From NCBI RefSeq assembly GCF_001194135.2, contig NC_069000.1, positions 41,051,175 to 41,091,954 of the forward strand: a stretch of 40,780 nt of DNA. The letters are read 5' to 3'. Both the position numbers and the translations under genes were made by a program. Of the stretch, positions 21,071-40,780 are shown one piece after another (positions within the stretch are counted from its first letter, which is position 1; the number at the start of each line of letters is the position of its first letter). Below the pieces are notes generated by a model, which had not been told where the DNA came from, did not search any database, and saw nothing but the letters and a program-made list of their open reading frames with translations. This DNA comes from Octopus bimaculoides (lineage: Eukaryota).

Positions 21071-22051
21071 ATTTATATAATAAGTTTAGATAATGTGTTT
21101 ATATCGACCCTGCTTTACGTTACTAATTGTTGTACTTATAATTCGTAGTAGTAAAATACGTATAATTAACATGACATTATTTAGAGGACAATACATAATT
21201 AGAATAAAATTAACTACGCTATTTATTAATAAATATATAATTTAATGAAAATATATTAATTTATAAAAGATTAGCATTATTTACGTACTTCATATATATA
21301 TATATATTACGTATTTTAGTTTTAAATTATTTAGACTATAAAAACATCCAGAATTTAAAATTTTCCAGTAAATGGTATATTACAGATCAATTTTTCTTAT
21401 TCTGAAATAAATTTTGTCATTTTATTAACTGAAATACGTACTTCTCTCTACTTTTAGTGACACCATACTGTCACGTGATATATTTCTTATAAATGTTACG
21501 TTTAAAATTTTAGTTCACAGAAATTCGTCGATAAAATAAGTCATGCTTTTAATTTTAAATAATATTGTTAAATATTCTCATTTATTTATTGTATTAACAC
21601 GGATTTTTTTATTTTTGTTTCTTTTCTTAATGGATGATTATTATTAACTTCACAGTAATTATTCGATAGGATAAACTATGCTTTTAATTTCAAGTAATAT
21701 TATTAAATGTCTTTCACTTAGTTATTGTATTAACACGTATTTATGTATATTTATTTCTATTTTTAAATAATTATTATGTGGTAAGATACTTACATTGATT
21801 TTTTGATTTTTATTCTAGACTTGATGAGTGACAATATTTTTTAAATAGAATTAAATTTGGATCGATTTATTTTTGAATTGAATTAATTTTATCTGTCCTA
21901 ATATAGCCACGAAACGCGCGTAGTCAATTTACTACTATTAACTTTTTATGCTTTATTGAATTCTTAGATTAGTATTTTTATAGTGTATTTTTTCTGGATG
22001 GTGTCATTGAGGTCTTTCATTGTCTGAATTGTATAATAGGGGTTCTTCCTT

Positions 22052-22091
<40 letters not shown>

Positions 22092-22846
22092 CATATATCT
22101 ATGAATATATATATAAATATGTATATATATATNNNNNNNNNNNNNNNNNNNNNNNNNNNNNNNNNNNNNNNNNNNNNNNNNNNNNNNNNNNNNNNNNNNN
22201 NNNNNNNNNNNNNNNNNNNNNNNNNNNNNNNNNNNNNNNNNNNNNNNNNNNNNNNNNNNNNNNNNNNNNNNNNNNNNNNNNNNNNNNNNNNNNNNNNNNN
22301 NNNNNNNNNNNNNNNNNNNNNNNNNNNNNNNNNNNNNNNNNNNNNNNNNNNNNNNNNNNNNNNNNNNNNNNNNNNNNNNNNNNNNNNNNNNNNNNNNNNN
22401 NNNNNNNNNNNNNNNNNNNNNNNNNNNNNNNNNNNNNNNNNNNNNNNNNNNNNNNNNNNNNNNNNNNNNNNNNNNNNNNNNNNNNNNNNNNNNNNNNNNN
22501 NNNNNNNNNNNNNNNNNNNNNNNNNNNNNNNNNNNNNNNNNNNNNNNNNNNNNNNNNNNNNNNNNNNNNNNNNNNNNNNNNNNNNNNNNNNNNNNNNNNN
22601 NNNNNNNNNNNNNNNNNNNNNNNNNNNNNNNNNNNNNNNNNNNNNNNNNNNNNNNNNNNNNNNNNNNNNNNNNNNNNNNNNNNNNNNNNNNNNNNNNNNN
22701 NNNNNNNNNNNNNNNNNNNNNNNNNNNNNNNNNNNNNNNNNNNNNNNNNNNNNNNNNNNNNNNNNNNNNNNNNNNNNNNNNNNNNNNNNNNNNNNNNNNN
22801 NNNNNNNNNNNNNNNNNNNNNNNNNNNNNNNNNNNNNNNNNNNNNN

Positions 22847-22886
<40 letters not shown>

Positions 22887-23370
22887 TCATATACGGACAT
22901 ATGTGTATATATGCACACACACCCACACACACACACATATATATTCTTCTGTATGCATATTTATATTTATTCATTCGTAAGTGTATGAATTACAGATAGT
23001 TATGACTGTAATTCTATAGATTTGTGCGTTTAATATATTCATACATCTATGTGTTTGTGTCTGTCTATATATAATAATTACCTATATTACGTACGTGTCA
23101 CAAGTATGAATATAAACACACATGCGCACGCACATACACCCAGATACAATCACATGTAATTTGCAAACATACACTTAAGCATGTGTGCGCGCGTGTGCGT
23201 GTTTTTGTCTATTTTTTTATCTCTATTCAGTATTCTACAAATCAACATTATATACAGTTTGTATACACTGACTACTTCTATTTCTTTTACTCTTGTACTG
23301 TCGACACTACTACTGTTGTTATTCTGCTACTTATGTCACTGCTCCTCTTCACTTTCTAATATACTTTTCA

Positions 23371-23725
23371 CTAGAATAACATAAAGAATATCTCCCACAT
23401 TCTGTCGACCAGTTTGTAGTCATTACCCATGGTATAATAGGCTATGGATTGCGTGTCATTACCCATCGTCTGTGCGAGTATCTTACTCCGCATTATCATA
23501 ACCGGGTCCAAAATATTAAGTGAATTCGGAGATGGACATGGTATTATTTCAAATGGACTTCCTAGGCAAGGGCAAGCAAGTGGTCTGGTTGACTGACAAA
23601 GACGGTACTTTAATTGTAATCTAACACAAGGGACTGCAACAGTTACAAAAGCGGACCAATTCCTTGAAACACCACAGTATTTGCAAAAATCTATATCTGG
23701 TAAAGAAGAGCACTGGACCGTCGAC
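23371..23725 (-). CDS. Peroxidase-like gene B, terminal coding exon (end of peroxidase domain + TSP1-like module + tail, TAG stop)
   Basis: Acceptor tctttatctttcaag is phase-2 compatible with the exon at 29383. STVQCSSLPDIDF matches the family C..LP.iDl motif, then WSAFVTVAVPCVRLQLKYRLCQSTRPLACPCLGSPFEIIPC; stop at 23371-23373. Confidence 0.88.
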
Positions 23726-23974
23726 CTTGAAAGATAAAGAGAAGAGAAATAGATATACATCATAAGGGTAAACGAGAAGAAATAAAATTTACGAAATCCA
23801 AATATTAAAACCATCAATAATAACAACAACAGCAGCAAGATGCTGATCTGAAATTACATAAAAAGATGTTCAGTCATGACACAACAAATCTATCACTGGA
23901 CGATACAACAACTCTGTTCATTCCAGAAACTGGAATATACGGAAATTCTTTTATTTTATTGTTTCTTCTTTTCT

Positions 23975-24180
23975 ATTCTAGGCACCAGCCCGAAATGTTT
24001 GGGGAGGGGGCCAGTCGATTAGGTCTACCCCAGTATGTAACTGGTATTTAATTTATCGACCCCGAAAAGATGAAAGGCAAAGCCGACCTCGGCGGAATTT
24101 GAACTCAGACCGTAAAGACAGACGAAATACCGCTAAGCATTTCGCCCGGCGCGCTAACGTTTCTGTCAGTTCGCCGCCTT
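23975..24180 (-). mobile_element. tRNA-derived SINE family 2 copy in gene B intron
   Basis: atttgaactcagaccgtaaagacagacgaaataccgctaagcatttcgcccggcgcgctaac is the reverse complement of the family consensus. Confidence 0.75.
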
Positions 24181-26490
24181 TATGGAATATAAAAGAATTG
24201 TTCGTTTCAGGCAATGCAGGTAAATACAAAAGCCACATATATAGAAAATATCAGTAGTATAAATAAGGCAAAAAATATTGCAGAACATAATATAAACCAA
24301 ATTACAGGAAATTGTCAATCAGATATAACAACCTAAAGCCGTATACAACATAAAGCAGCTGAAAAGTCGTTGTTCATCACATAAATCATACGACAAACTG
24401 TAAAACACGAACCAAACTAATTAACAGCATCAATATCCCAAATACCGGCTACAACATACCGTTTATATGTAATCACATTCCAATAGCAAACTCACATATC
24501 AAACACTTCAAAAAATATTCACTGAAACCTGTACAAAACATAAGATTTTTAAACTGTTCCACACTATTCTATCAGATACTAGAAAATACTTTTTTTCAAT
24601 AGGTGTGGTGGGTGACAATTGNNNNNNNNNNNNNNNNNNNNNNNNNNNNNNNNNNNNNNNNNNNNNNNNNNNNNNNNNNNNNNNNNNNNNNNNNNNNNNN
24701 NNNNNNNNNNNNNNNNNNNNNNNNNNNNNNNNNNNNNNNNNNNNNNNNNNNNNNNNNNNNNNNNNNNNNNNNNNNNNNNNNNNNNNNNNNNNNNNNNNNN
24801 NNNNNNNNNNNNNNNNNNNNNNNNNNNNNNNNNNNNNNNNNNNNNNNNNNNNNNNNNNNNNNNNNNNNNNNNNNNNNNNNNNNNNNNNNNNNNNNNNNNN
24901 NNNNNNNNNNNNNNNNNNNNNNNNNNNNNNNNNNNNNNNNNNNNNNNNNNNNNNNNNNNNNNNNNNNNNNNNNNNNNNNNNNNNNNNNNNNNNNNNNNNN
25001 NNNNNNNNNNNNNNNNNNNNNNNNNNNNNNNNNNNNNNNNNNNNNNNNNNNNNNNNNNNNNNNNNNNNNNNNNNNNNNNNNNNNNNNNNNNNNNNNNNNN
25101 NNNNNNNNNNNNNNNNNNNNNNNNNNNNNNNNNNNNNNNNNNNNNNNNNNNNNNNNNNNNNNNNNNNNNNNNNNNNNNNNNNNNNNNNNNNNNNNNNNNN
25201 NNNNCCAATGAAGGAATCTATATGTGATTATTCGATTTGCTAGAACATTCGAAGAAGTCTTCTTTAAATTACACTCTGGTGTCTTTTAAAAGATGGTGCA
25301 TTGGACGGCATACTACAGTGCATTTTATTGCTGAAATTAAGGCGAGGTGATCATGGTTGGAATAACTTTAGGTTAACGTGCTATCCCACAAGAAGAAGGG
25401 ACCAGCATTACATGATCAAACTACAACAGTGTCGCCCAAGTCACAAACATTTTAATGTTGAAATGCCCTTTGTCATTTTCAACTAGATGTAAGCACCATT
25501 CATGTGGAACACCGGAACTACGAATCGAAGTTTGCTTTTCAGTTACAATTTTTCTACAACTGCTCAATGAAGGGCTGTACTGCAACAAAAATCGACATTT
25601 TCATTTGTACAAATGAGAATTAATATATGAAATATACAATATACACGAGAACATGAATATATGTATTTACACATAAATACACATATTTCACTCTCAATCA
25701 ATCAATGCATTCTTACATATGCCGATAACCAACGTTCTGTTGAACCCATTGTACTGTAGTGGTTGAATAACACATAGTCGTCTATTTAAAAGAATTCATA
25801 CATAAATTTAGACACAACAGTCATATTAAAATATCACAGAGTATAAATGTGAGTGGGCGAGTGAAAGAAGAAGATTAAACTAATTATCATTATTATTGTT
25901 GTCGCCGTAGGTGGACTTGTGTTCTGGATCTCCGTACGTTTGTGAGAATTTCACTTGTTTAAAAGGTTTTATACTTTATGTTTGGTTATTTAAATTATTT
26001 TACAAGCCAGCTGCTCTTCTGGAGAGCTGACTTTTGGGGGTGAGGTGCTATACAGCCCTTTTTTCTGTCTCTGTTTCAAAATTCTTCAAAATTCTTCAAA
26101 ATTCCTGGACGTGTTGTTTTGAGCTCGTAAGATGATATTGATTTTCGTTGCTTTCTAAAGTTTCGTTACCTGTTTTGTTGAAATGTTGTCGTTCTAAAAC
26201 ATTGTGTGTGCCCTGGAAGGGTTTGATGTAAAAGTTTGCACTTTCGAGTGCGAATTTTGGACATTCTTTCATCATTCANNNNNNNNNNNNNNNNNNNNNN
26301 NNNNNNNNNNNNNNNNNNNNNNNNNNNNNNNNNNNNNNNNNNNNNNNNNNNNNNNNNNNNNNNNNNNNNNNNNNNNNNNNNNNNNNNNNNNNNNNNNNNN
26401 NNNNNNNNNNNNNNNNNNNNNNNNNNNNNNNNNNNNNNNNNNNNNNNNNNNNNNNNNNNNNNNNNNNNNNNNNNNNNNNNNNNNNNNNNN

Positions 26491-29360
26491 CCGCTAGCAA
26501 CACACTCAACACAGAGATAAACTCTACTAAAAGCTCTTCCAACACCACCACCTCTAGTAACACCAACGACAGAAACAGAGAAAAGTTCAACAACTCAAGT
26601 GAGAATAAATCTGCAAACACTGAGACAGCCACCACAAACACGAACAACAATAGCAACAAGCCAAGCGTTTGCGAGATCGCCTCTATGGCGAAGCAAATTA
26701 AAGAAAGGTTCAATTACATAATCGAAGATATTAAAGGCTTGAAGGAGCTATTGGCAAGAAGTGGAAACAATATCTCTCTAAATACCCGAAATGAACTAAT
26801 AAGGGATACGAATAAGAAAACCCTCATTTACAAATGTGTGACTATAAATAAAAGACTATAACAAGCAATACGGTAGCGACTTGAGCTCATTTTAAAACCG
26901 ATGTGGAATGCAAAGACATATATAAAAAGAGGAAAACGTTTCGGCACTGCGTGGATGCGTTTTGCAACAGATCAAGAAGCAAGACACCATTCCACAGTGC
27001 CACTAAGATCTCAGGATTTTTCGCTCGTACTGACGTGCCTTGGTCGGTGCGTAACGAAAGTAAAAATTGGGGAGGTGCACCCAGAGATAAATATACGCTG
27101 GGTGGTTGATAGCGGCAGTCCTACTGGACATAGACAACACCGCCAAAATACTCAAAATACTGAAGGTGCACAAGTTGCACCAACAAAACCGGTCGGGTCA
27201 GTGGATGGAGGTCTTAATTCAAGTAGAACAAGGGAACATAGAATTCAACCCCGTTTTGTTCAGCCTACTGGACGGCACAAAACTCTACGAGGCCGTAAAG
27301 CACATAAGGCCGACGTGGTGACAAAAACCACCTCAAGGACTCTTGTCCCAGACAGGGAAGGGAGGAACGGCTGGCACTTTTACTCACACCAGCTTTGGTG
27401 CAATCTCCAGCGCAGCAGCATCAGCAGGTACTCTAGCTGCAGATGTCAGTGGCCAACACAGCAAAGATACCATCAATATGACCATCTTCACCACCACTAC
27501 CAACAACAACTCAGCAAAGGTACCATCAACATCACCATCATTATCACCACTACCAACAACCACAATACTGCCCTCAGCCACCGTCGAAACACCACCAACA
27601 GCAACTACAGCAACAGCACAAAAAAACCGACCTCAATATCAGTCAGAGTACCGTCACCAGCAGTAGTAGCAGCACCAGCAGATGCAGTCCTACCAAGTGT
27701 AACACTAAGCAGTGGCCCTCAAGTTATCCCCTTCCCGACCAGGGCAACTCAGACCTTCCAAGCACTGAGGTCGAGAAGGATGAATGGCTTACAGTCCCAA
27801 GTAAAAAGTGAAGAAAGAAAACGGCAAAACCACTAGAAGAAAAAGGTGGGGGGGCACAAAGTAGCTGAATATCCCAACAGCAGCAACACCCAAACACAAC
27901 CGCCAGCAACAACAAAAAAACCTCATTCACCTGCACAACAGCCTCATCCACAAACACAGGCAAGAACACAAATCCAAACACCAGGAGATTCCACAAACAT
28001 AACCAACCTGACAGCCATAAACACAAATAACATCGAACTCATGAACCATTTAAGAGATCACACAGACACCACAATAAAAATTTTGTTTTCCCGACACACA
28101 ACACACCACCATCACATATACAATTGTTTAAAATATCACAACAGACATACAAAATTTTTATATCAAATTACCCCGGAGCTGTTGGGCAGTTTCAGAAAAA
28201 AACATTACCAAAGGGCTTTTCAAAAATCTACTTGTGAAAACACGCATCCAAGAACAGTCTAAGGAACGGCGACTACACTTGCTCTCCGTCAAGCAAACGC
28301 TGGAGGTGCCACGGCCTGAGCGCATGCTTCTTCCACAGCTCGTCTGTTTGACTTATCTGCAATAACATTCGGGCCTGGGTCTAAGGATAATTTCCAGAAA
28401 TCCCTGGCCTGGCAGTAAATCTGGGGTGCACTATCTGTTCGAGATAAACTTTACAAGCACGGAAGTGCCGTCAGCTGAACCTACCCTAGCTGCGCGCAGA
28501 GCGAAGAAACCGTTCTCTACGCACTCGTTCAGTGCCTGAGCATTGCTGACCTGTAGGTTTNNNNNNNNNNNNNNNNNNNNNNNNNNNNNNNNNNNNNNNN
28601 NNNNNNNNNNNNNNNNNNNNNNNNNNNNNNNNNNNNNNNNNNNNNNNNNNNNNNNNNNNNNNNNNNNNNNNNNNNNNNNNNNNNNNNNNNNNNNNNNNNN
28701 NNNNNNNNNNNNNNNNNNNNNNNNNNNNNNNNNNNNNNNNNNNNNNNNNNNNNNNNNNNNNNNNNNNNNNNNNNNNNNNNNNNNNNNNNNNNNNNNNNNN
28801 NNNNNNNNNNNNNNNNNNNNNNNNNNNNNNNNNNNNNNNNNNNNNNNNNNNNNNNNNNNNNNNNNNNNNNNNNNNNNNNNNNNNNNNNNNNNNNNNNNNN
28901 NNNNNNNNNNNNNNNNNNNNNNNNNNNNNNNNNNNNNNNNNNNNNNNNNNNNNNNNNNNNNNNNNNNNNNNNNNNNNNNNNNNNNNNNNNNNNNNNNNNN
29001 NNNNNNNNNNNNNNNNNNNNNNNNNNNNNNNNNNNNNNNNNNNNNNNNNNNNNNNNNNNNNNNNNNNNNNNNNNNNNNNNNNNNNNNNNGAAAGGTGGGT
29101 GAATGTTGGAAAAATGGTTAGTGTGAAAGGACCTATCTTGAGCATGCACCTGTGAAAAATAAAAAAGAATGGGTTTGTGTTTTTTCCACGAGCAATCTTT
29201 AAATCACCTCCCCTTTTTCGGAGTTTCAATTGTTTATCTTCATTATTTCTCTGTTGACACGATTTAAAAACCCTTTTTATTGTCATGTTATGTCCTTTTA
29301 CGATATTTTATGTAAGCCCTTGTGGCTGATAAAAGAATAAATTATCATTATTATTATTTA
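26491..29360 (+). mobile_element. L1/Tx1-like LINE with internal deletion, antisense in gene B intron
   Basis: ORF1-like RGKRFGTAWMRFATDQEA..KVKIGEVHPEI with S/T/N-rich linkers. zf-RVT-like ORF2 C-terminus ALSVRDKLYKHG..CAQSEETVLYALVQC at ~28430-28545. 3' end ataaaagaataa + (TTA)n at 29330-29360. No endonuclease or RT core is seen; gaps flank and interrupt the element. Confidence 0.7.
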
Positions 29361-29382
29361 CAATGGTGAAATGAATACTCAC

Positions 29383-29482
29383 GAGTTATGTACAAAAGCA
29401 TTTTCTTTTACTTCAGTTAAACCCTCTACGTTACGACACAATAGTTGAGCCATAGTCACATTTCTGATCTCTGCAAGTTGCT
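29383..29482 (-). CDS. Peroxidase-like gene B exon (EQLAEIRNVTMAQLLCRNVEGLTEVKENAFVHNS)
   Basis: Acceptor ttttcgtatttcag, donor gtgagt, 100 nt, phase 1/2; matches the family QL.EIR..tla.iiCdN motif. Confidence 0.9.
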
Positions 29483-30005
29483 CTGAAATACGAAAAAAAG
29501 AGCAAAATAAATGTTTGCAGAAATGGTCGAACATCAAACAACAAAGAACAAAAACATCAATAAACTACAGTGTATGTCACATCATTACAGAATACAACGT
29601 ATATACAAAAAGGAAACAAGAACACTTGACATGAAAGAACACTTGAAAAGGCTAGAGGCAAATTTTATTGCCGAATCACACACTCTCTCCAAACCTAATT
29701 CCTGAAATTACAATTAAAACTGTAACATCCAAACTACATTATCCTAAAATGTATATCTGTCTTATTCATTACGACAGCAACAATATCTTTTCTCATGCAC
29801 TCTGAATTCAAATCTTACCTGAATCGATTATTTCGTCCATCTAATAAAAAAGAATAGAATGCGTGTACTGGGATTGCTTCATTCAACTGCAACTCGTTAT
29901 TCTTTAAATCTGTGGTGATAATCCTTATATTGTAATTACTAATAAGTAGCATGCGACTCAATTCCATAGAAAGATATCCTTTTTCCATATTATTAAGCTA
30001 TTGGA

Positions 30006-30350
30006 ATGCGGCGAGCTTTCGGAACTTTTAGCACGCCCGGAAACAAAACTTAACAGTACCTCGTCAGTCTGAGTTCAAATTCTGCTGTAGTGGTCTTCGC
30101 ATACAACACAATGTCAACAAAAATAGTGGTTTGAGCTATTGGAACGCGGTGAGCTTTCAGAAATGTCAGCACACCGGAAAAATTGCTTAGCATTACTTAG
30201 TCCGTCTTTATGTTCTGAGCTCATATTCCATGATGGTGGACTTCGCTTTTCATCTTTTCGGGGCAAAAAATAAGTACTATGTACAAAGGTCGATGTAATC
30301 CAGTAGCGGCTTCTCCCAAAATTTCTGCACTATTGCCAAAATTCGAAAGC
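30006..30350 (+). mobile_element. Two tandem partial copies of SINE family 2
   Basis: gagctattggaatgcggcgagctttc (~29994) and gagctattggaacgcggtgagctttc (~30134) each begin a SINE body. Confidence 0.65.
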
Positions 30351-30439
30351 ATTATTAAGCTACTGGGTGGCCAGATAAATTGTTGGATTTATTGCCATTT
30401 ATTTCAATTCTTATTCTTCATCAGCAATTTTTACGAATC

Positions 30440-31020
30440 GGCCGATAATGTATTCTCCTTCATTGTTCACAGCTCCTTGCCAACGTTGCGCTGGCTTGTC
30501 AGTGCCTTGAGCAGGTGTATTTGCTGAACATAGAGTTCTGCACTGACAGTTTAGTTGCTGTGAAGCATTTTTGTGGTGGATTAGCCCTTTCCAGTCCCAC
30601 CAAACGTAGAACAAACATTTTTTTGTGCAGATGCAACTCTGGCTTGGCTCTAGTTTTGGCCTTCTTGTCGGGACTCGGACGTCCTTTCTTCTTCTTCATA
30701 TTGACAGAAAGAAATCATGTTTCATTGCTCGTGATAATACGATAAAGGAATAAGTTTGTTCGCGAGCAGCATGTTCTCAAGCGAGCTAAATGGTAAATAC
30801 AGAGGAGTGCTCTTACATGCAAGGCAGGTGTCTTCCACTCCACGTGGTTTTTGGTCAATTCTTAGTGGATTGAGACAGATCTCTTGGATGAGTTGGTCCA
30901 ATAGAACCTCACTGAACTGAACAATTCGGCTTAAAAGCTGATGTATCAGAGACATCGCGCTTCCTCTCCTTGAATCAGGGTTACCATTTTTGTTTTGTTT
31001 TGTTAACCTACGGCTGAACA
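30440..31020 (-). mobile_element. Degenerate mariner transposase
   Basis: FLYRIITSNET*FLSVNMKKKK..SPDKKAKTRAKPELH.KKM and VWWDWKGLIHH are mariner catalytic-core motifs, with frameshifts. Confidence 0.85.
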
Positions 31021-31964
31021 CAATGTCCCGAATGCCTTTGACATCTTTGGAACCAAAGTAAAGAAAAGGGGGTATCGATAAATGCTAATTCTTTCTCCTC
31101 TTGGTACTTTAACGTCATGTACTTGAAAAGAGGTAAAATTTATTCAAATTTCAAACACGATACACAAAACGTTCAGAAGACTACAGCTATAAAGACCCAT
31201 AAAACACTGATATTTTCATATTAATTCAAATAACATTGAAAACAAATGAACGAATTTATCTGACAACTCAGTATTTGCTTACTGTGTTCAAATGACCTGG
31301 GGGTGATAAAATAAGAACCAGCCATAGATCACTTTATTATGACCGACTGTCTTGAAATACGTTGTTTTCTACCTTGTGGATGGTCGATGCTTGTTATGAT
31401 TATTGTCATTTATAATGGTCGTATGTCACATCAGCTACCGAACGTTTGTTGAATTTTGTTGAAAGCAATTTAGTTATGGTTGTGAACTTCTGCTGAAACT
31501 GAGTAAAGTCATGTACCTCACTGAAAAGGCTTTGAAACTGCACCCTAAATAACGTTCATGTTTGTGTTTTTCTTTTAATTCTGTTTGAATTTTGGAGTCA
31601 GTGACGCCTAATATTAAATTCAGAGATGAGGGAAGGAGTTTCGCTTTAAGGAACATTACTTCATCCTTATCGAAAGAGGATGTGTGATGGACTGAAAGGA
31701 CAGAAGACAGATAGTCCTCTTCAGTCAACGCTTTAACTTCTATTTGGAAAAGAAGTAATGGGTTGAAAGAAATGTACTCTCCACCCCACCCCAGAAATAT
31801 TATTGAAAAGTGAATTTCGCGAGAAAGACCGAAGCAGGTGGACCGGTAGGCTGAAGAATAAGGAAGAGTAAAGTAAACTTTCCACTGTACTCATGGTCAA
31901 AAGAATGGCTCGGGATCTGGGGAAGGGAGCTGACACAATCGTTTATTCGCACTGGGAAAAGTGC

Positions 31965-32220
31965 CTGTGGCGTTTCGTCCGTCTTTACGTTCTGAATTCG
32001 AATTCCGCCCAGGAATTTCGGGGTCGATAAATAAGAACCAGTTGAACTCTGGAGTTGATGTAATAGACCTAGCCACTTCATGAACTTGCTGGCTTTGTGC
32101 CAAAATTTGAAATCATCATTTTAATTAAGGCGATGAGCTGGCAGAATCGTTAGCACGCCGGATAAAATGCTTAGCGGCATTTCGTCCGTAACTACATTCT
32201 GAGTCAAAGTTCCACCGACG
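31965..32220 (+). mobile_element. Partial SINE family 2 copies
   Basis: ggcgatgagctggcagaatcgttagcacgccggataaaatgcttagcggcatttcgtcc at 32129, and a preceding 3' part ending gtgccaaaatttgaaa. Confidence 0.7.
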
Positions 32221-32463
32221 TCGATTCTTTTGGGATTCATCCCGACAGTAATGATCTTTCCAAATTTATTTGGCGGATTAAAACGTTAGAGGAAAAGGAA
32301 ATCATTGATATTGTATACAGATGATGAAACTGAAAACTTGAATCCTGATTCTTTAATTGATGCATAAATCATCATTTTCTATGTATTTGTGCACTGTGGT
32401 AAAGCTGTAACATTATTAAATTAAAGAAAGTCAAGTAAAAATGATAAATAATTTGTAACTTAC

Positions 32464-32624
32464 CATCTGTGAATACACCGGCGTTCTCAAAATAAAGTCT
32501 GTCATTTCTTTGCAATAAATTAAAAGTATCTTCGAATAATCTTTTTAATGTTGGTCCAACCATCGCGCCAGGAACTACGTTCTCCGATAAAGCCCCAGTT
32601 AAGAATTCAATGTCGAAGATGCTT
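32464..32624 (-). CDS. Peroxidase-like gene B exon (SIFDIEFLTGALSENVVPGAMVGPTLKRLFEDTFNLLQRNDRLYFENAGVFTD)
   Basis: Acceptor tattacag, donor gtaagt, 161 nt, phase 2/1; matches the DIDL..GGL.E...G..VGPT..C....QF..L..GDRF.FEN motif. Confidence 0.92.
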
Positions 32625-33612
32625 CTGTAATACACACACGTACACACATAGTTATTATGTGTGTATGTTTGCGTTACAAACAACACTATGGTTGCATCTT
32701 ACGATTTTATCAAGTGAATGATTAATTTGGGTAAATTTAAGAACATACAATTTATGCTTGAATTATATTTGAGATGAAATAAAGGAAAGTTGACATGGAA
32801 CAAGTAAAGATTGAAGAAGTAGAGAAATGAAGGAAACAAGGATTCATTCAATCTTAATATGATGATGTCTTATTTTGAAATTGTAGCGAATTTTATTTAA
32901 AACGGATGCCGAAAGACATAAAGGGAAGACTGATGAGAATAAATACTCTTTTTCTGCAACTTTTCAAACCTCAACGACATACCCTTTACAATTTGTTTAC
33001 TTATGTATGGTTGCAACGCTCCCAGTTACAATCTTTCGAATAATCGACATTGCGAAACTGAGTATTACAATTGCAGCTGCATGTGACAAACAAGATAAAT
33101 TCTAGAATTATATTGTATGCTATTTCACATAACCTAGTTCGTTTTCGTTATTCAAATATATGACACCGGTCACAATAAGTACTTTCTCAAGAATCCTTTT
33201 CGTTTTATTTATGCGAGTTACCTTAACCATAAATGTGCTCTTATCAATATGACTAAGTGTTTTGTCTGCCGAAGGTACTATATAAAAATTGCAATGTTGT
33301 TGAAAACTTGTGATGCAGAAAGATGTATTCACAGCTATCTTCTTGACTTGAGACAGATTATCTTTCGTTAATGACATATCAATTTTGGAGTCATTCTTGA
33401 TTCTTGAGATTATATTTCCTTCTAATTTGGCGTTTAATGATTTTCCATCAAGTAATTACTCTTTGTGGAAGGAGAGATAATTTCAATGAAACAAGAATTT
33501 ATATTTTATATTGTTTAAGATATCCTTAATAAGCTCTTTTTTCTCATATTTGTTTGTGCCGCGCGTGTGTGTGTGAGAGAGAGACAGAGCGAAATAGATA
33601 AAGGGAGAGTGT

Positions 33613-33662
<50 letters not shown>

Positions 33663-34000
33663 NNNNNNNNNNAGAATGAGTTTAAGTCCTATATGGTTAT
33701 TAATACGCTGTATGATAAATGAAATAGGGCTTAATTTCCGCCTACGTTAGTCACCCACTCTTGCATATTACTGTCTATGAAGCGGGAAAGTGAAGTATAA
33801 TATAATAACCACCGCCATTTTATACCTTACCGTGCATTTGTTGGTATATGTATTAATCAAGAATTGTTGTCGTACATATATAACTGATACTAAATCGTCG
33901 CCCGACCGCCGTTGCAAGATGAAACTGTATTATACACGTAAATTTTTTTTCAGTTGGTCTAAATACTAGTTTAAATTAATGGTACCTAATTATAGTAAGG

Positions 34001-34250
34001 GTGATGTGTGAGTGTTTATGAGCGAAACACCTAAGCTCTACGCGGCTCTAGCAGAAGGTAATGGAGAACTTCTGCTGACTCTTTCGCCACAACTTTCTCT
34101 CACTCTTTCCTCCTGCAACTAGCAGCTCACCTGTGACGGACCGGTGTCCCGTCCAAGTGGGGAACTTATACGCCAACGAAACCGGAATACCAGCCCTCAT
34201 GAATCAGGCATGGCCCGAAATGGATAAAGCAACAACAAGAATTATATTAC
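34001..34250. mobile_element. ~250-bp SINE-like insertion present only in the left arm
   Basis: The right arm reads ...tatagtag|ggttggctga continuously; the left arm has 250 extra bases between these flanks. Confidence 0.75.
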
Positions 34251-34597
34251 GGTTGGCTGAATTAATTATAGTTGTGTGTATTTGGTTGGAGCATGTTTTC
34301 GTACAGGTGACATATTCAGTTTAATGAATACTCAGGTCAAATCTATTAGCATCCGATTTCAGGAAAATAATAATTATTGCTCATGTTCTAATGATCTAAA
34401 ATTCCTAACTGCAAAATCTTGTTAATTCTATTCGTAGACTTACATAATTGCTGCTGAACCACACAGGCCAGATGCAAACAGATTACTTTTCACATAAATA
34501 TAAGAAAACATTGCAACTGTCAAGTTGGATGCGGCTCAACAATATTTTGAATAGTATACAACCAATTAAAAAGTAAAATACTTTAATATCCACTCAC

Positions 34598-34798
34598 TGA
34601 TGAGTATTTGATAAGGCAATTTTCATTGAAGTATTGTGGTGAGGCAAATCGGGAATACTTGTAGGCAAATTAGCAATCGGAACTGTGAGTGCCAGCCAAA
34701 CGAAGTACGGTGGTAGTCCTAAATAACGCGTGTCTTGGGTTAAGATTGACACTATATCGGAATATTGACAATTGTTTCGATAAGCACAGGGTATTTCT
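34598..34798 (-). CDS. Peroxidase-like gene B exon (EIPCAYRNNCQYSDIVSILTQDTRYLGLPPYFVW...)
   Basis: Acceptor tttttttcag, donor gtgagt, 201 nt, phase 2/2, open frame. DIVSILTQDTRYLGLPPY aligns with DLAALNMQRSRDHGLPGY of MPO. Confidence 0.92.
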
Positions 34799-35219
34799 CT
34801 GAAAAAAAAAAGAGAATTAGATATCAGAAAAAGGAAGTAATAAACTTAAAGGTGCATAATAATTTCTATAATTAGTAATACACCAGACATTCTAGGGAGG
34901 GATATAACGATTAAATTGATCCCAGTATTTTATTGTTTCTTATTTCATCTTCCGAAATATGACAAATAAAATCTACTTTGAAAGAACGTAAAAGGCAAAC
35001 TTTTTGTCCAATGATCAAACCATATTTTCATCCAGTAATTTCATGACGATTGTATAATTCACACACGCACAAACACATGTACATATGCGTGTTTGCCTAT
35101 ATAGATACATACATCCAAAATGGTATTTATTTTACAGACACCAGTGCTATCAAAGAATTGTCTGCTCTGATGGAATTTGAATTCAGTAAGTAGAGTTATC
35201 GAACGGAATATAGACTTAC

Positions 35220-35640
35220 CTTCCGATTTTTAAACTGCAGTTTGTCAGCATTCCATTAACAATGTTTGTCATCTCGGTATTTGAGGTTAATGGTACATCG
35301 TGCACAAGAACATTCGAACCTACAGTATCTCTCAACATCGAAGCCCCAACTAATTTATAGGCAGCGGCGAAAGAATTAGAAACCATAGGCAAATTTGTGC
35401 TATTGTAAGTATGAGTACTTGTATTCAAACATTTAACTGAGGTGTTCGTACCGAGCAGCAGTGGTAAATATTCGTTGCATATAATATGCTGGAACATTGC
35501 AATTAACAACGTCCTTGCTTCATTTCGGCAATCTGTATTGTTGCAAGTTTGATTAAGTCTACCGACAAGTCTATTGTGTTCACGAAGGAAAACATGATAT
35601 AATGCCATCACTAAGGGGTTTTCCCTGATTGGCGCTGAAA
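35220..35640 (-). CDS. Peroxidase-like gene B central exon (SAPIRENPLVMALYHVFLREHNR...FAAAYKLVGASM...)
   Basis: Acceptor tattttgcag, donor gtaagt, 421 nt, phase 1/2; family hallmarks FLREHNR, EAR, Q.I..EYLP.LLG and SNxF. Confidence 0.93.
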
Positions 35641-36555
35641 CTGCAAAATATAGAAAACATGTTTTGGTTTTATTAAACGAAGAAATTTCTTAGTGGAAGG
35701 AGATATATCTGTAAAGGCAACTGGCTCAAATTTAGCATATTAATGGTTTTAAATCTGGCTTAAATATAGCAATTTCGTTGAATCGATCCTAATGCTCAAC
35801 TGTTAGTTATCTTGTCAATACCGAAAGGCGAAGTCGACTTCGGTGGCATTTGAACTCAAAGCGTAAAGAGGGGAAAATGCCCTAAGCATTTTATCTATGC
35901 AGTAATGATTCAGCCAAGTCACTGCCTTGGTCACTTTTAGCATATTAATAACTATTATTCATTAAGTAACAATCGACTGAAATGCTTGTTAACATTCAAC
36001 AAGATATAATTTCAGTTCTGCTAATGTTTGAATGAAATCAAAATTCAGAGGAGAGTATTCTATTGCCTTGGCCATCTTAACTGGTACTTCTCTTAAAACA
36101 CGAACATGATCTATGAAATTCAAATATTTTCTCTAAATCTTAACTATTTTCAGGAAAAATTATTATGATGATACACTTGGTATGTATATTTGTTGTATGA
36201 CTGAAGGAGATGAGTACAACCAAAAATACAAAATATTCTACATATAACTGCCTACATCTTCAGGGATAACTTCTACCAAATAACTATTCAGGGCATCAAT
36301 GATTTCCTTCATTAAATTACTACATTGGAATAAATTAATGATATGGGTTGGATTTCAAGACTTTTACACAATTATTATCGATTCAAGCGCAAAAAAAATT
36401 ACTTTAAATCAGAGATGATTCCGACATTAAATTTGTCTTTTTTCATCTCATATAAAAGACGTACAGTATAAATTAACAAAGTTCTGACAAACGATGCTCC
36501 CTGACAATAATTAATACAATGAAAGCTTATCCCAGAACGTAAAATTGAAAGCATA

Positions 36556-36679
36556 ACGAGTTATAACATTATATAGCTAAAGTATAGCGTTCATAGCCTC
36601 TCTCCCTTAACAGTTCCCTGTAAACTAGCGTTCTTGTTTCTAACGGTCATTTACTTAGCTATATAATGTTATAACTCGT
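36556..36679. repeat. Small fold-back element with perfect 25-bp inverted repeats
   Basis: acgagttataacattatatagctaa (36556-36580) is the exact reverse complement of 36655-36679; 74-bp spacer. Confidence 0.9.
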
Positions 36680-36691
36680 ACGCAACCTTAC

Positions 36692-36749
36692 CATTAAGCG
36701 CATGTCTTGCTTTTGTAAGTTGGTTCCCTGACGATGAATTTATGTGCAT
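36692..36749 (-). CDS. Candidate upstream exon of gene B (MHINSSSGNQLTKARHALN)
   Basis: Donor G|gtaagg is phase 1, as the 35640 exon requires, and the frame is open back to an ATG. No good acceptor and no clear family motif; speculative. Confidence 0.3.
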
Positions 36750-36845
36750 TTCCAGCACCTCTTACTTCTTTGGAGTAGAGTGCACATATATTTTGAAACA
36801 TATGTTGGAATTAAAGGAACTTATTGATCATATGCGTTTTGCTCC

Positions 36846-36884
<39 letters not shown>

Positions 36885-37710
36885 TATCTANNNNNNNNNN
36901 TATACATGAGATATGTACCGTTGAAGTTTTGTAGTACACTTATTCCAAGAACACATACATTTTATGTATCTTCCATGAAAAGATGAAAAGTGCTTGTATT
37001 TGCACTTTCAAAGGGGCTTTGTCCCGTTTTATAAACCCCATTAGGTGGGGTTAAATAGTATTGTAAGATGGTGAAATTTTGGAAGTCGTCTTTATCTAGT
37101 ACCTAGTAGTTATGTTGCCATATTCATTGAAATCGGAGGTATTTGAAATTTCACTGGGGGTGTTTTTCCCACACTGACCAAAAATACAATGCAATTTCAA
37201 CCATTCAGAAAAGACCCATTTCTCTTTTTCTTTCTTTCTTTATTTATATATTCATTTCTTCCTTTCTTTCTCTCTTTTATTCTTTTTTTCTCTCTCTCAC
37301 CAAGACTCAAAAAATTGGCCACACGCACATACTTACAAATACATACATACACACATAAGCGCAAGCTTACACACAAACACAGACATAGACACACAGAGAT
37401 TAAAAATCCCAATACAGTTCGATCTTTTTCCAGCTAACTCAGGTACATATAAAAGGTATGAATTTTCTTCAAATAAATCATTCATGATGAATCTCTCAAA
37501 AGGAGATGAATGTTGAAGATAAATACTTATCCAAAATCCTCCGTTTTCTTTATGTGTATGTGCGTGCGTTTCCCTAATGTATATATATATATTATATGTG
37601 TGTGTGTGTGNNNNNNNNNNNNNNNNNNNNNNNNNNNNNNNNNNNNNNNNNNNNNNNNNNNNNNNNNNNNNNNNNNNNNNNNNNNNNNNNNNNNNNNNNN
37701 NNNNNNNNNN

Positions 37711-37754
<44 letters not shown>

Positions 37755-38996
37755 CACCAGAATAAAAGTAAAGACAAAACCAAATGTTGATATTTCGATA
37801 TTTTGAATGCATGTAATAGAGGCGGATGGGTTAGGCATGTAAGGTGGAAGTGAAAAAACATAGACAGATAAGGGGAAGCTGGATGAGGGAAAATCAAGTA
37901 CATAAATAGATAAATACATGATTAAACCGGCAATAAATCTGATTGGCAAAGAGTAGGAGACGAATGAGTAGAGGAAAACGGTTTTTTTTATCACGTGGGG
38001 TTACATAACGACTTCCTCATTGCACGCATGTGGCAGTTAAGCAGTTTTTTTTTATTCAATGGTGTTCAGTATGTTTTCGGTTTTTACTTTTGGGATAAGC
38101 TTTCATTGTATCAATTATAGTTAGAGAGTATCATTTGTGAGATCTTTGTTAATTTATACTGTACGTCTTTTATATGAGAGAGATGGAAAAAGACAACTTT
38201 AATGTCGGAATCATCTCTGATTTAAAGTAATTTTTTTCTGCGCTTAAATCGATAATAATTGTGTAAAAGTCTTGAAATCCAACCCATATCATTAATCTAT
38301 TCCAATGTAGTAATTTAATGAAGGAAATCATTGATGCCCTGAAAAGTTATTTGGTAGAAGTTATCCATGAAGACGTAGGTAGTTATATATAGAATATTTT
38401 GTATTTTTGGTTGTACTCATCTCCTTCAGTCATACAACTAACATACATACCAAGTGTATCATCATAATAATTTCTCCTGAAAATAGTTAAGATTTAGAGA
38501 AAATATTTGAATTTCATAGATCATGTTCGTGTTTTAAGAGAAGTACCAGTTAAGATGGCCAAGGCAATAGAATGCCTTCCTTTGAATATTGATTTCGTTC
38601 AAACATTACAGAACTTAAATTATACCTTGTTGAATGTTAAGATGCATTTCAGTCGATTGTGACTCAATGAATAATAGTTACTAATATGCTAAATGTGATC
38701 AAAGCGGTGACCTGGCAGAATCATTACTGTATGGACAAAATGATTAGTGCATTTTTCCGTCTTTGATTTCCGTCTTTGATTTCAAATGCCACCGAGGTCA
38801 CGTCGCCTTTCAGGATTGATAAGACAACTACCTGTTGAGCACTGGGGGTCAAATCCACGCAATTGCTGTCCTTGAACCAAAATTTGAAACCCTTATTACG
38901 CTAAATTTGAGCCAGTTGCCTTTACAGATATATCTCCTTCCACTGAGGAATTTTTTGTTTAATAAAACCAAAACATACGTTTTCTATATTTTGCAG

Positions 38997-39438
38997 TTGC
39001 GGAACCAATCATGAAAAACCCCTTAGTGATGGCATTATATCATGTTTTTCTCCGTGAACACAATAGACTTGTCGAGACACTTACCCCAGCTTGCGGCAGC
39101 ACAGGTTGCCGAAATGAAGCAAGGACGTTGTTGATTGCCATGTTCCAGCATATTGTATGTAACGAATATTTACCACTGTTGCTCGGCTCCTCAGCTAGAT
39201 GTTTGAATACAAGTAATTATACTTACGATAACACAAGTTCGCCTATGGTTTCTAATGCTTTCGCCGTTGCCTACAAATTAGTTGGGGCTTCGATGTTGAG
39301 AGATACTGTAACTATCGGTGGAAATTTAAATGTTTCTGTGAAAACTATACTGAACGACTCAACGCAAGTAGACTCAGATCTCGAGATGACGAACATTGTT
39401 AATGGAATGCTGACAGACTACAGTCTTAAAATCGGAAG
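38997..39438 (+). CDS. Peroxidase-like gene C central exon (AEPIMKNPLVMALYHVFLREHNR...FAVAYKLVGASM...)
   Basis: Acceptor tattttgcag, donor gtaagt, 442 nt, phase 1/2, open frame. Paralog of 35220-35640 with a net +7 codons. Confidence 0.93.
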
Positions 39439-39865
39439 GTAAGTCTATATTCCGTTCGATAACTCTACTTACTGAATTCAAATTCCATCAGAGCAGACAA
39501 TTCTTTGATAGCACTGGTGTCTGTAAAATAAATACCATTTTGGATGTATGTATCTATATAGGCAAACACGCATATGTATATGCGTTTGTGCGTGTGTGAA
39601 TTATACAATCGTCATGAAATTACTGGATGAAAATATGGTTTGATCATTGGACAAAAAGTTTGCCTTTTACGTTCTTTCAAAGTAGATTTTATTTGTCATA
39701 TTTCGGAAGATGAAATATGAAAATAAACTATTGAGATCCAATTAATCGTTATATCCCTCCCAGTATGTGTGGTGTATTACCAATTATACAAATTATTATG
39801 CAATTATAATTCCTATAAGTTTATTGCTTCCTTTTTCTGATATCTAATTCTCTTTTTTTTTTCAG

Positions 39866-40066
39866 AGAAATACCCTGTTCTTTTCGAGACGACTGCCAAT
39901 ACTCCGATATAGTGTCAGTCTTAATCCAAGACACGCGTTATTTTGGAATACCACCGTACTTCGTTTGGCTGGCGCTCACAGTTAATTCAACTGATATGCC
40001 TTCAACGATTGATAATTTGCCCTACCAGACACCTGCGAATCTAATAGCCACAGATTCATCTTATCA
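39866..40066 (+). CDS. Peroxidase-like gene C exon (EIPCSFRDDCQYSDIVSVLIQDTRYFGIPPYFVW...)
   Basis: Acceptor ttttttttcag, donor gtgagt, 201 nt, phase 2/2, open frame; paralog of 34598-34798. Confidence 0.92.
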
Positions 40067-40738
40067 GTGAGTGAATATTAAAATATTATACTTTTTAATT
40101 GGTTGTATACTATTCAAAATATTAGTGAGCCTCTTGCAACTTCATAGTTGTATTACTTTCATATGTGAAAAAAATTTGTTTGCATTTGGTCTGTGTGATT
40201 CAGTAGCAATTAGGTAAGTCTACGAATAGAATTAACAAGATTTTGCAGTTAGGAATTTTAGATCATTAGAACATGAGCAATAATTATTTTCCTGAAATCG
40301 GAAGCTAATAGATTTGACCTGCGTATTCATTAATCTGAATATGTCACCTGTACGAAAACATGTCGCAAGCAAATACACACAACTATAATTAAGTCAGCCA
40401 ACCCTACTATAATTAGGTACCATCAATTTCAACTAGAATTCAAACCAATTACGTTGTTTTCCATGAGAAAAAAAAATTTACGTGTATAATACAGTTTCAT
40501 CTTGCAACGGCGGTCGGGCGACGATTTAGTATCAGTTATATATGTACGACAACAATTCTTGATTAATACATATACCAACAAATGCACTGTAAAGTATAAA
40601 ATGGCGGTGGTTATTATATTATACTTCACTTTCCTGCTTCATAGAGAGTAATATGCAAGAGTGGGTGACTAACGTAGGCGGAAATTAAGCCCTATTTCAT
40701 TTATCATACAGCGTATTAATAACCATATAGGACTTAAA

Positions 40739-40780
<42 letters not shown>

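Follow-up and report, generated by a model that had tools for sequence, protein, structure and literature searches.

Exons are more diverged than introns between two peroxidase-like genes in an inverted duplication of the Octopus bimaculoides genome assembly

A 40,780-nucleotide stretch of the Octopus bimaculoides genome (contig NC_069000.1, positions 41,051,175 to 41,091,954, called the window below) was found to carry one entire arm and the beginning of the other arm of an inverted duplication, each arm holding a gene annotated as a peroxidase. Between these two genes, which we call E and F, coding sequence is more diverged than the DNA around it: in a comparison of 9,225 aligned columns without gaps, 15.9% of exon positions and 8.5% of non-coding positions differ. 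We conclude that the excess of exon over non-coding divergence is statistically solid and real in this assembly. The explanation that we favour has, in our judgement, about an even chance of being right: E and F would be a young inverted pair, in which hypervariable exon segments of either copy have taken up replacements about twice as fast as neutral changes, over a background of patchy gene conversion.

Results

Divergence of exons and non-coding DNA

The two arms extend over ~15 kb each (left arm 21306-36555, right arm 38070 to ~55592) and are linked by a blastn chain at 82-90% identity. Coordinates beyond 40780 are in an extended numbering, from sequence fetched downstream of the window. 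The original prediction had in view only the inner 3 kb of each arm, and the arms were found to be colinear across several contigs. Six paralogs, A to F, lie inside ~170 kb of the contig (C20), and E and F come last in the row. Gene E, on the minus strand, is annotated as 'heme peroxidase 2' (P0001, 401 aa), and gene F, on the plus strand and cut by the window end, as 'peroxidase mlt-7' (P0002, 414 aa). Exon sets chosen by their splice sites translate exactly to P0001 and P0002 (100% identical), which means that the exons and introns had been labelled correctly at the outset.

The difference between exons and non-coding DNA is significant whether the exons are displaced by circular-shift permutation (p = 0.0003) or the five segments are placed at random (p = 0.006). 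Within the inner span alone (33673-40745), 100 of 614 exon positions differ, against 133 of 1955 non-coding ones (Fisher p = 2e-11). Identity between E and F is 85.5% for exon b, 74.6% for c, 94.4% for d, 93.0% for f and 76.1% for g, while the introns reach 96.7% (b-c), 93.7% (c-d) and 87.4% (d-f), and the flanks 90.5% (upstream) and 91.2% (downstream). Of all 200-nt windows along the arms, the two with the highest divergence fall in exons g and c. Divergence within exon c is uneven, with 14 differences in the first 120 nt and 37 in the last 81 (46%); paralogs B-D, too, vary most in this last segment. The edges of exon g are sharp: identity is 98-100% in the intron immediately before it and 95-97% in its 3' flank, whereas windows within the exon are at 65-87%. 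Exon b differs between the copies by in-frame indels of 6, 6 and 21 nt.

The hand counts from which the original prediction started could be reproduced. Positions 34941-35219 and 39439-39717 differ by 2 mismatches in 279 nt; for the distal intron tract, announced at about 4 differences in 278 nt, 4 mismatches and 1 indel were found (33674-33950 against 40469-40746). The 201-nt exon, exon c, has 51 differences (74.6% identity), with 29 replacement codons and 5 that changed only synonymously, and a hand count on the translations again gave 6 identities in its last 27 residues. The claim that exons are more diverged than introns thus extends beyond this one exon to the whole gene pair (15.9% against 8.5%).

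Could the excess be produced by the near-identical tracts alone, through their lowering of the non-coding average? Per site, non-synonymous differences amount to 168/946 (17.8%), compared to 681/8010 for non-coding DNA (p = 4e-17). When all non-coding 100-nt windows with a divergence of 3% or less were dropped, non-coding divergence rose to 650/5900, or 11.0%. This is still below the 15.9% of exon columns (p = 4e-6), the 17.8% per non-synonymous site (p = 1.6e-8), and the 109/421 (25.9%) of non-synonymous sites in exons c and g (p = 4e-16). Collapsed tracts had been named at the outset as what could undo the observation; the exon excess persists with all near-identical non-coding windows removed.

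As a control pair from the same family, paralog B was compared to its ortholog in O. sinensis. Exons differ there at 4.4% and non-coding DNA at 7.5%, with a ratio of non-synonymous to synonymous divergence (omega) of 0.48, significantly below 1 (p = 0.007). The pair shows what is normally seen, at a neutral distance close to that between E and F. The O. sinensis ortholog (locus L031, CM016876.1:8070800-8104482) has the same exons as paralog B, spread over ~30 kb compared to ~13 kb in O. bimaculoides, the extra length being due to large intron insertions.

Several trivial causes of the excess were examined and rejected. CpG or GC mutation bias does not account for it: CpG sites diverge alike (24% in exons, 23% in non-coding DNA), and non-CpG sites are two-fold apart (15.0% vs 7.5%). 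The ratio of transitions to transversions is 0.91 in exons and 1.66 in non-coding DNA (p = 3e-4), meaning that transversions are enriched in exons, and the difference remains when only the most diverged non-coding windows are considered (1.74, p = 6e-4). Hard-wired A-to-I editing was dismissed on the share of coding-strand A/G changes, which make up 27% of exon and 31% of non-coding differences. E and F are not an allelic (haplotype) duplication either, given the 8.5% non-coding divergence, an insertion resembling a short interspersed nuclear element (SINE) in E only, and many indels. Nor is one copy dead and the other conserved: amino-acid replacements polarised with outgroups fall 34 on the E lineage and 39 on the F lineage.

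Selection at the codon level

Over 405 codons, the NG86 method gives a non-synonymous divergence (dN) of 0.203 and a synonymous divergence (dS) of 0.194, i.e. an omega of 1.04. Because many codons carry 2-3 changes, NG86 dS is unreliable as a neutral yardstick, and clean four-fold degenerate sites and a maximum-likelihood (ML) codon model were used beside it. At four-fold sites 12/120 positions (10%) differ, the same as in non-coding DNA (p = 0.51), which suggests that the NG86 dS is inflated by multiple-hit codons. By codon position, 80, 68 and 66 differences fall at positions 1, 2 and 3.

Exon by exon, the ML model (GY94) gives an omega of 0.83 for b, 1.01 for c and 2.71 for g (p = 0.013). 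Codons were also partitioned a priori by the agreement among paralogs B, C and D. The E-F omega is 0.56 at sites conserved in B-D and 1.61 at sites variable in B-D (p = 0.048); it reaches 2.0 (p = 0.055) for codons at which no two of B, C and D agree. Older paralog pairs have an omega of 0.35-0.73. For the diversifying selection proposed in the original prediction, the codon models thus give marginal, nominally significant indications in exon g (2.7) and at the family-variable sites (1.6), and none in the whole gene (1.0-1.2) or exon c (1.0). Both reading frames are open over more than 400 codons, for which the probability of meeting no stop is 0.0002-0.0006 with 193 neutral substitutions, and all exon indels between E and F are multiples of 3.

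Near-identical tracts and arm-to-arm conversion

Apart from the exons, the arms are anything but uniform. Per 100 nt, the divergence of non-coding DNA varies between 0 and 27%, with a variance/mean of 3.9 and pile-ups at 0-3% and near 10-11%. Perfect E-F runs of 295, 167, 151 and 134 nt were found; under uniform divergence, the expected number of runs of at least 100 nt is ~3e-4. The 2 mismatches of tract 2 (Table 1) lie 4 nt apart, between perfect runs of 151 and 134 nt, and tract 1 has its 4 mismatches and 1 indel in 277/278 nt, counts to be read with the reservation on exact differences given below. A further tract, 32267-32485, takes in the 3' end of E exon d, and the 3' part of exon f together with the next intron forms a stretch of 295 nt that is identical in E and F and ends at the N gap at 29089. 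We conclude that patchy gene conversion between the arms is supported, although some tracts may be assembly-collapsed. Since the tracts cover the 3' ends of exons d and f as well as the region upstream of b, the homogenisation is not specific to introns. The idea that conversion homogenises the introns thus stands as far as the perfect runs of 134-295 nt go, and has to be widened to exons d and f.

Upstream of exon b, the stretch 36040-36440 (minus strand) is 95-100% identical to 38190-38590 in F, with a perfect run of 99 nt. Exon b itself is less conserved than these ~400 nt, which are a candidate for a new promoter or 5' untranslated region (UTR) but may equally be one more conversion tract. 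An upstream exon, 'Ea' (35989-36132), was tried on account of its peroxidase-like 'FIDH' motif and rejected, because a 1-nt deletion breaks its frame in F and no consistent donor was found.

A transposon origin was rejected for both named tracts: tract 1 has only two copies in the 2.34-Gb genome, and tract 2 is present only in E, in F, in a redundant unplaced contig and, as a 70% match, in paralog D. Intron b-c can be aligned among C, D, E and F at 65-69% identity, where shuffled sequence gives 46.5%. No exon of E or F has a closer relative than its counterpart in the other copy, which leaves no sign of donors among paralogs A-D.

The encoded proteins

Exon b alone matches the Pfam family An_peroxidase (PF03098), with E = 5e-20 and 3e-19 in the two copies. 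The exon matches of E and F cover positions 207-370, 442-509 and 500-530 of the hidden Markov model (HMM), Pfam PF03098 being also precomputed on P0001 and P0002. The N-terminal peroxidase exons are present in A-D; E and F begin at HMM position ~207. In the family, both the signal peptide and the distal-His helix ('QFxxHD') are encoded by the upstream exons, and the full-length relative P0003 has a signal peptide, whereas none was found in the annotated models of E and F.

The octopus clade (P0001-P0008) has lost the residues of the active site. Full-length octopus relatives have F at the distal-His position, and the motif 'FRFGH', which in MPO/LPO holds the proximal haem-ligand His, reads AYKLVGAS in E and F and AYELxxxS in other clade members, the starfish outgroup having kept it (LRLGHS). 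Across the clade, the Arg/Glu ('RxxE') site has been replaced along with the distal and the proximal His; with both histidines gone, these proteins are pseudo-peroxidases. The next nearest relatives are only ~28% identical. No E/F-like protein was found in O. sinensis or O. vulgaris, where the best matches are 44-47% identical; this is consistent with a lineage-specific duplication of about the age of the B orthologs.

The product of exon g has no Pfam match, and AlphaFold2 predicts its domain at a predicted local distance difference test score (pLDDT) of 80-92. The C-terminal ~115 residues, also present in P0003-P0008, contain six or more conserved Cys followed by three helices. Octopuses may here have joined a domain not described so far to a dead peroxidase. 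N-glycosylation sequons of the form N-x-S/T, borne by exons b, c and g, number 11 in E and 9 in F, compared to 0-4 in paralogs B-D. Only 3 are common to E and F, meaning that sequons turn over rapidly; the Asn/Ser/Thr-rich composition may contribute. A literature search found no published description of this peroxidase-like family or locus.

Features of the window and state of the assembly

The coordinates of the two genes and of the elements around them are collected in Table 1. The SINE-like insertion in E is 85-89% identical to dozens of the loci listed for it, on many contigs, among 18,235 first-look candidates; its insertion postdates the E/F duplication. The element in the spacer that resembles a miniature inverted-repeat transposable element (MITE) is found on the E side, at the very point where the homology between E and F ends.

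Table 1. Arms, exons, near-identical tracts and inserted elements of the E/F duplication
Feature	Position	Strand	Remarks
Left arm	21306-36555	-	carries gene E; blastn chain to right arm
Right arm	38070-40780 in the window, on to ~55592 (extended coordinates of C20)	+	carries gene F
Central spacer	36556-38069		without E-F homology; holds N gaps 36891-36900 and 37611-37710
E exon b	35220-35640	-	ATG 35608, possible acceptor 35640; HMM ~207-370
E exon c	34598-34798	-	201 nt; 150/201 identical to F
E exon c, hypervariable tail	34598-34678	-	27 codons; 37 of these 81 nt are unlike F
E exon d	32464-32624	-	HMM 442-509; 94.4% identity to F
E exon f	29383-29482	-	HMM 500-530; 93% identity to F
E exon g	23371-23725	-	Cys-rich C-terminal domain; 76.1% identity to F
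F exon b	38997-39438	+	annotated ATG 39011
F exon c	39866-40066	+	201 nt; hypervariable tail 39986-40066
F exon d	43953-44113	+	past window end
F exon f	46996-47095	+	past window end
F exon g	53454-53808	+	past window end
Tract 1 in E	33674-33950		inside intron c-d; abuts (AG)n and the 10-N gap 33663-33672
Tract 1 in F	40469-40746		abuts (CT)n and a 2,583-N gap
Tract 2 in E	34941-35230		5' part of intron b-c and last 11 nt of exon b; 2 mismatches
Tract 2 in F	39428-39717		partner of 34941-35230
SINE-like insertion	33999-34242		244 nt, E only, absent from F
MITE-like element	36556-36679		perfect 25-nt terminal inverted repeats (ACGAGTTATAACATTATATAGCTAA)

The window contains 14 N gaps of 10 to 870 nt, many of them within 850-29089, and over the 190-kb cluster ~19% of positions are N. 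The gaps of the spacer, 36891-36900 and 37611-37710, touch neither the homologous arms, whose inner ends are at 36555 and 38070, nor any exon, and they are crossed by no reading frame. The second, flanked by (TG)n/(CA)n, is the sole connection of the two arms. Exactly 100 N among gaps of estimated size looks like a scaffolder's join, by common practice. The inverted head-to-head layout with its 1.5-kb spacing is therefore a statement of the scaffold join; the sequence comparison of E and F is independent of it. The gap 33663-33672 stands at the margin of the distal near-identical tract in E, and the 2,583 N begin directly past the window end, within F intron c-d.

At the other end of the window, the 5' exons of paralog D, encoding its N-terminal peroxidase part, were found at 281-454 and 1820-1996 on the minus strand, with the later exons 8-25 kb upstream of the window. 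The annotated protein (P0007, 395 aa) is short at its N-terminus, probably due to assembly gaps.

Discussion

A young pair under selection and conversion

In the explanation that we favour, E and F would be the product of an inverted duplication specific to this lineage, which took in exons b-g, the 3' two-thirds of a gene belonging to a cluster of six copies. The cluster itself would be part of an octopus-restricted clade of haem-peroxidase-like proteins that lost their histidines and carry a novel Cys-rich C-terminal domain. Three processes would then have acted on the pair. Ordinary neutral divergence would have brought the arms to ~9-11%, near the distance between O. bimaculoides and O. 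sinensis at paralog B. Conversion from arm to arm would have reset patches of 150-400 nt to 0-1%, in introns, in flanks and at the conserved ends of exons d and f. Finally, amino-acid replacement would have been faster in both copies, frames being kept, above all in segments that already vary strongly across the family, namely loops of exon b, the 27 codons at the end of exon c and the greater part of exon g, and would have brought them to a nucleotide difference of 23-46%. We infer from these patterns that the exon excess reflects positive or diversifying selection and not escape from conversion. The strongly diverged segments would either block conversion or be shielded from it, and the E and F proteins would be made, and would act, outside the cell.

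Several observations weigh against this account. The whole-gene GY94 omega of 1.20 (pairwise ML) does not differ from 1 (p = 0.36); exon c, the 201-nt exon on which the original prediction focused, has an omega of ~1.0; and the codon tests that are nominally significant would fail correction for the number of partitions tried. The four-fold estimate counts only replacement-free codons and would come out too low with a mixture of converted and unconverted tracts, in which case exons merely escaping conversion could mimic the excess. As to the genes themselves, the ~5 upstream exons of the family, signal peptide included, are absent anywhere near E and F; a search upstream of exon b for a shared replacement first exon with a signal peptide gave weak candidates only; and the mean AlphaFold2 pLDDT is 52.5, with values below 50 over most of the truncated peroxidase part. 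The last points concern the assembly (2.34 Gb in 145,327 contigs), which is short-read and gap-rich, with near-identical tracts adjoining gaps. An unplaced contig of 288 nt, C76584, equals 34942-35229 exactly and ends at the points from which E and F diverge, as would a contig lying between two forks of the assembly graph. Because of this contig, and because the tracts 33674-33950, 29090-29384 and 25205-25548 end at N gaps, exact difference counts within the near-identical tracts are not to be trusted.

Escape from conversion

The same contrast would arise if conversion, acting at various times, had erased an old divergence over most of the arms and had spared a few segments that take in parts of exons by chance or through weak selection. 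The duplication would then be old, with a true divergence of at least 25%, and the unconverted segments would be near-neutral in truncated, dying or relaxed copies. We regard this as an unlikely explanation, but as the main rival. A whole-gene omega of 1.0-1.2 agrees with it, as does an NG86 dS of exons b, c and g (0.17-0.31) that exceeds intron divergence. The over-dispersed non-coding divergence, with some windows at 20-25%, speaks for it too, and the genes are 5'-truncated, without signal peptide and without catalytic residues. What argues for selection instead is, to begin with, the place of the diverged segments, which are enriched in exons at p = 0.0003 to 0.006. Both frames moreover stayed open (P ~0.0004) with their indels in frame, and the exon transition/transversion ratio is unlike that of equally diverged non-coding windows (p = 6e-4). 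Four-fold sites stand at 10%, not 25%. An old duplication also predicts an E/F-type protein in O. sinensis or O. vulgaris, and none was found there.

Assembly artefact and ectopic conversion

Gap closing could have pasted collapsed repeat nodes into both loci, thereby exaggerating the contrast and possibly the inversion. The match of C76584 to one tract and its end at the E/F fork point in this direction, together with the tracts that end at N gaps, the 14 gaps of the window and the joining of the arms solely over the 100-N gap. A second unplaced contig, C9924 (217 nt), is identical to F over the aligned F part and 94% identical to E 32871-33087; both contigs are redundant leftovers, showing the patchwork assembly of the locus. 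Such an artefact could inflate the identity of the tracts without removing the exon contrast, which survives tract removal (p = 4e-6 and p = 1.6e-8). The tracts retain copy-specific differences, a graph fork at both ends of C76584 would imply that reads link the contig to both flanks, and the E-only SINE with the many indels indicates two real loci. We therefore hold this explanation to be quite improbable. Any claim on the structure or copy number of this cluster does need a long-read assembly.

It is very improbable that ectopic conversion with paralogs A-D as donors placed the diverged exon segments in E or F: the six paralogs do lie within 170 kb and exon c of E is somewhat closer to B (66.2%) than that of F (58.5%), but E and F are mutually closest in every exon (74.6% for exon c vs 58-66% to B-D, 76% for exon g vs 52-56%), with replacements spread over both lineages.

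Relation to known systems

Duplicated venom genes evolve fast, as described for Crotalinae phospholipase A2 (PLA2) isozymes, three-finger toxins and 'ASSET' segment switching (PMC2474615, PMC2711939, PMC6062510). E and F share with them introns and flanks much more alike than the coding regions, replacement changes at or above the synonymous rate, location in a tandem gene cluster and a Cys-rich product. The last 27 codons of exon c, a short exon segment altered almost past alignment, are reminiscent of ASSET. Intron and exon rates of PLA2 genes were reportedly treated by Nakashima et al. in 1993/1995. There are differences from venom duplicates as well: the E and F models lack a signal peptide and give no sign of a venom or secreted product, their whole-gene omega is not significantly above 1, and they are one pair only, the older paralogs being at 0.35-0.73. 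Their scaffold, unlike the small toxin folds, is a dead peroxidase domain.

The ampliconic palindromes of the human Y chromosome undergo arm-to-arm conversion, which keeps their arms more than 99.9% identical, and 'islands of divergence' occur in duplicates under concerted evolution. E and F resemble the former by their inverted arms, short spacer and long perfect runs within diverged sequence, and the latter by the coincidence of diverged islands with functional segments. Their arms are only ~85-91% identical overall, meaning that conversion is sporadic here, and, unlike in the Y palindromes, their inverted adjacency rests on a scaffold join. Compared to the enzymes of PF03098 (peroxinectin, chorion peroxidase, MLT-7 and peroxidasin relatives), homology extends over HMM ~207-530; E and F lack the N-terminal 40% and have the extra Cys-rich C-terminal domain, with the same exon phases as the full-length paralogs. 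The phenomenon is thus a known one, from accelerated venom and recognition duplicates and from palindrome conversion; the gene family and the organism are new for it.

It would be a long shot to go further and see in the haem-less octopus cluster a set of hypervariable recognition or defence glycoproteins, of which E and F would be a young pair with a new 5' end in place of the lost exons and with segments driven apart or switched as in ASSET. In that view the dead enzyme scaffold and the Cys-rich domain would serve to display fast-changing segments, with conversion holding the remainder of the palindrome together. If selection in a young pair is real, E and F would be a clean invertebrate case in which, following a recent duplication, exons have changed at about twice the pace of their own introns, a pattern otherwise known mainly in venom, immune and gamete-recognition genes. 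The case offers an internal control, an orthologous pair of the same family with the normal pattern, and a palindromic setting that lets selection and gene conversion be told apart. The cluster would then be a candidate for a fast-evolving extracellular system in cephalopods.

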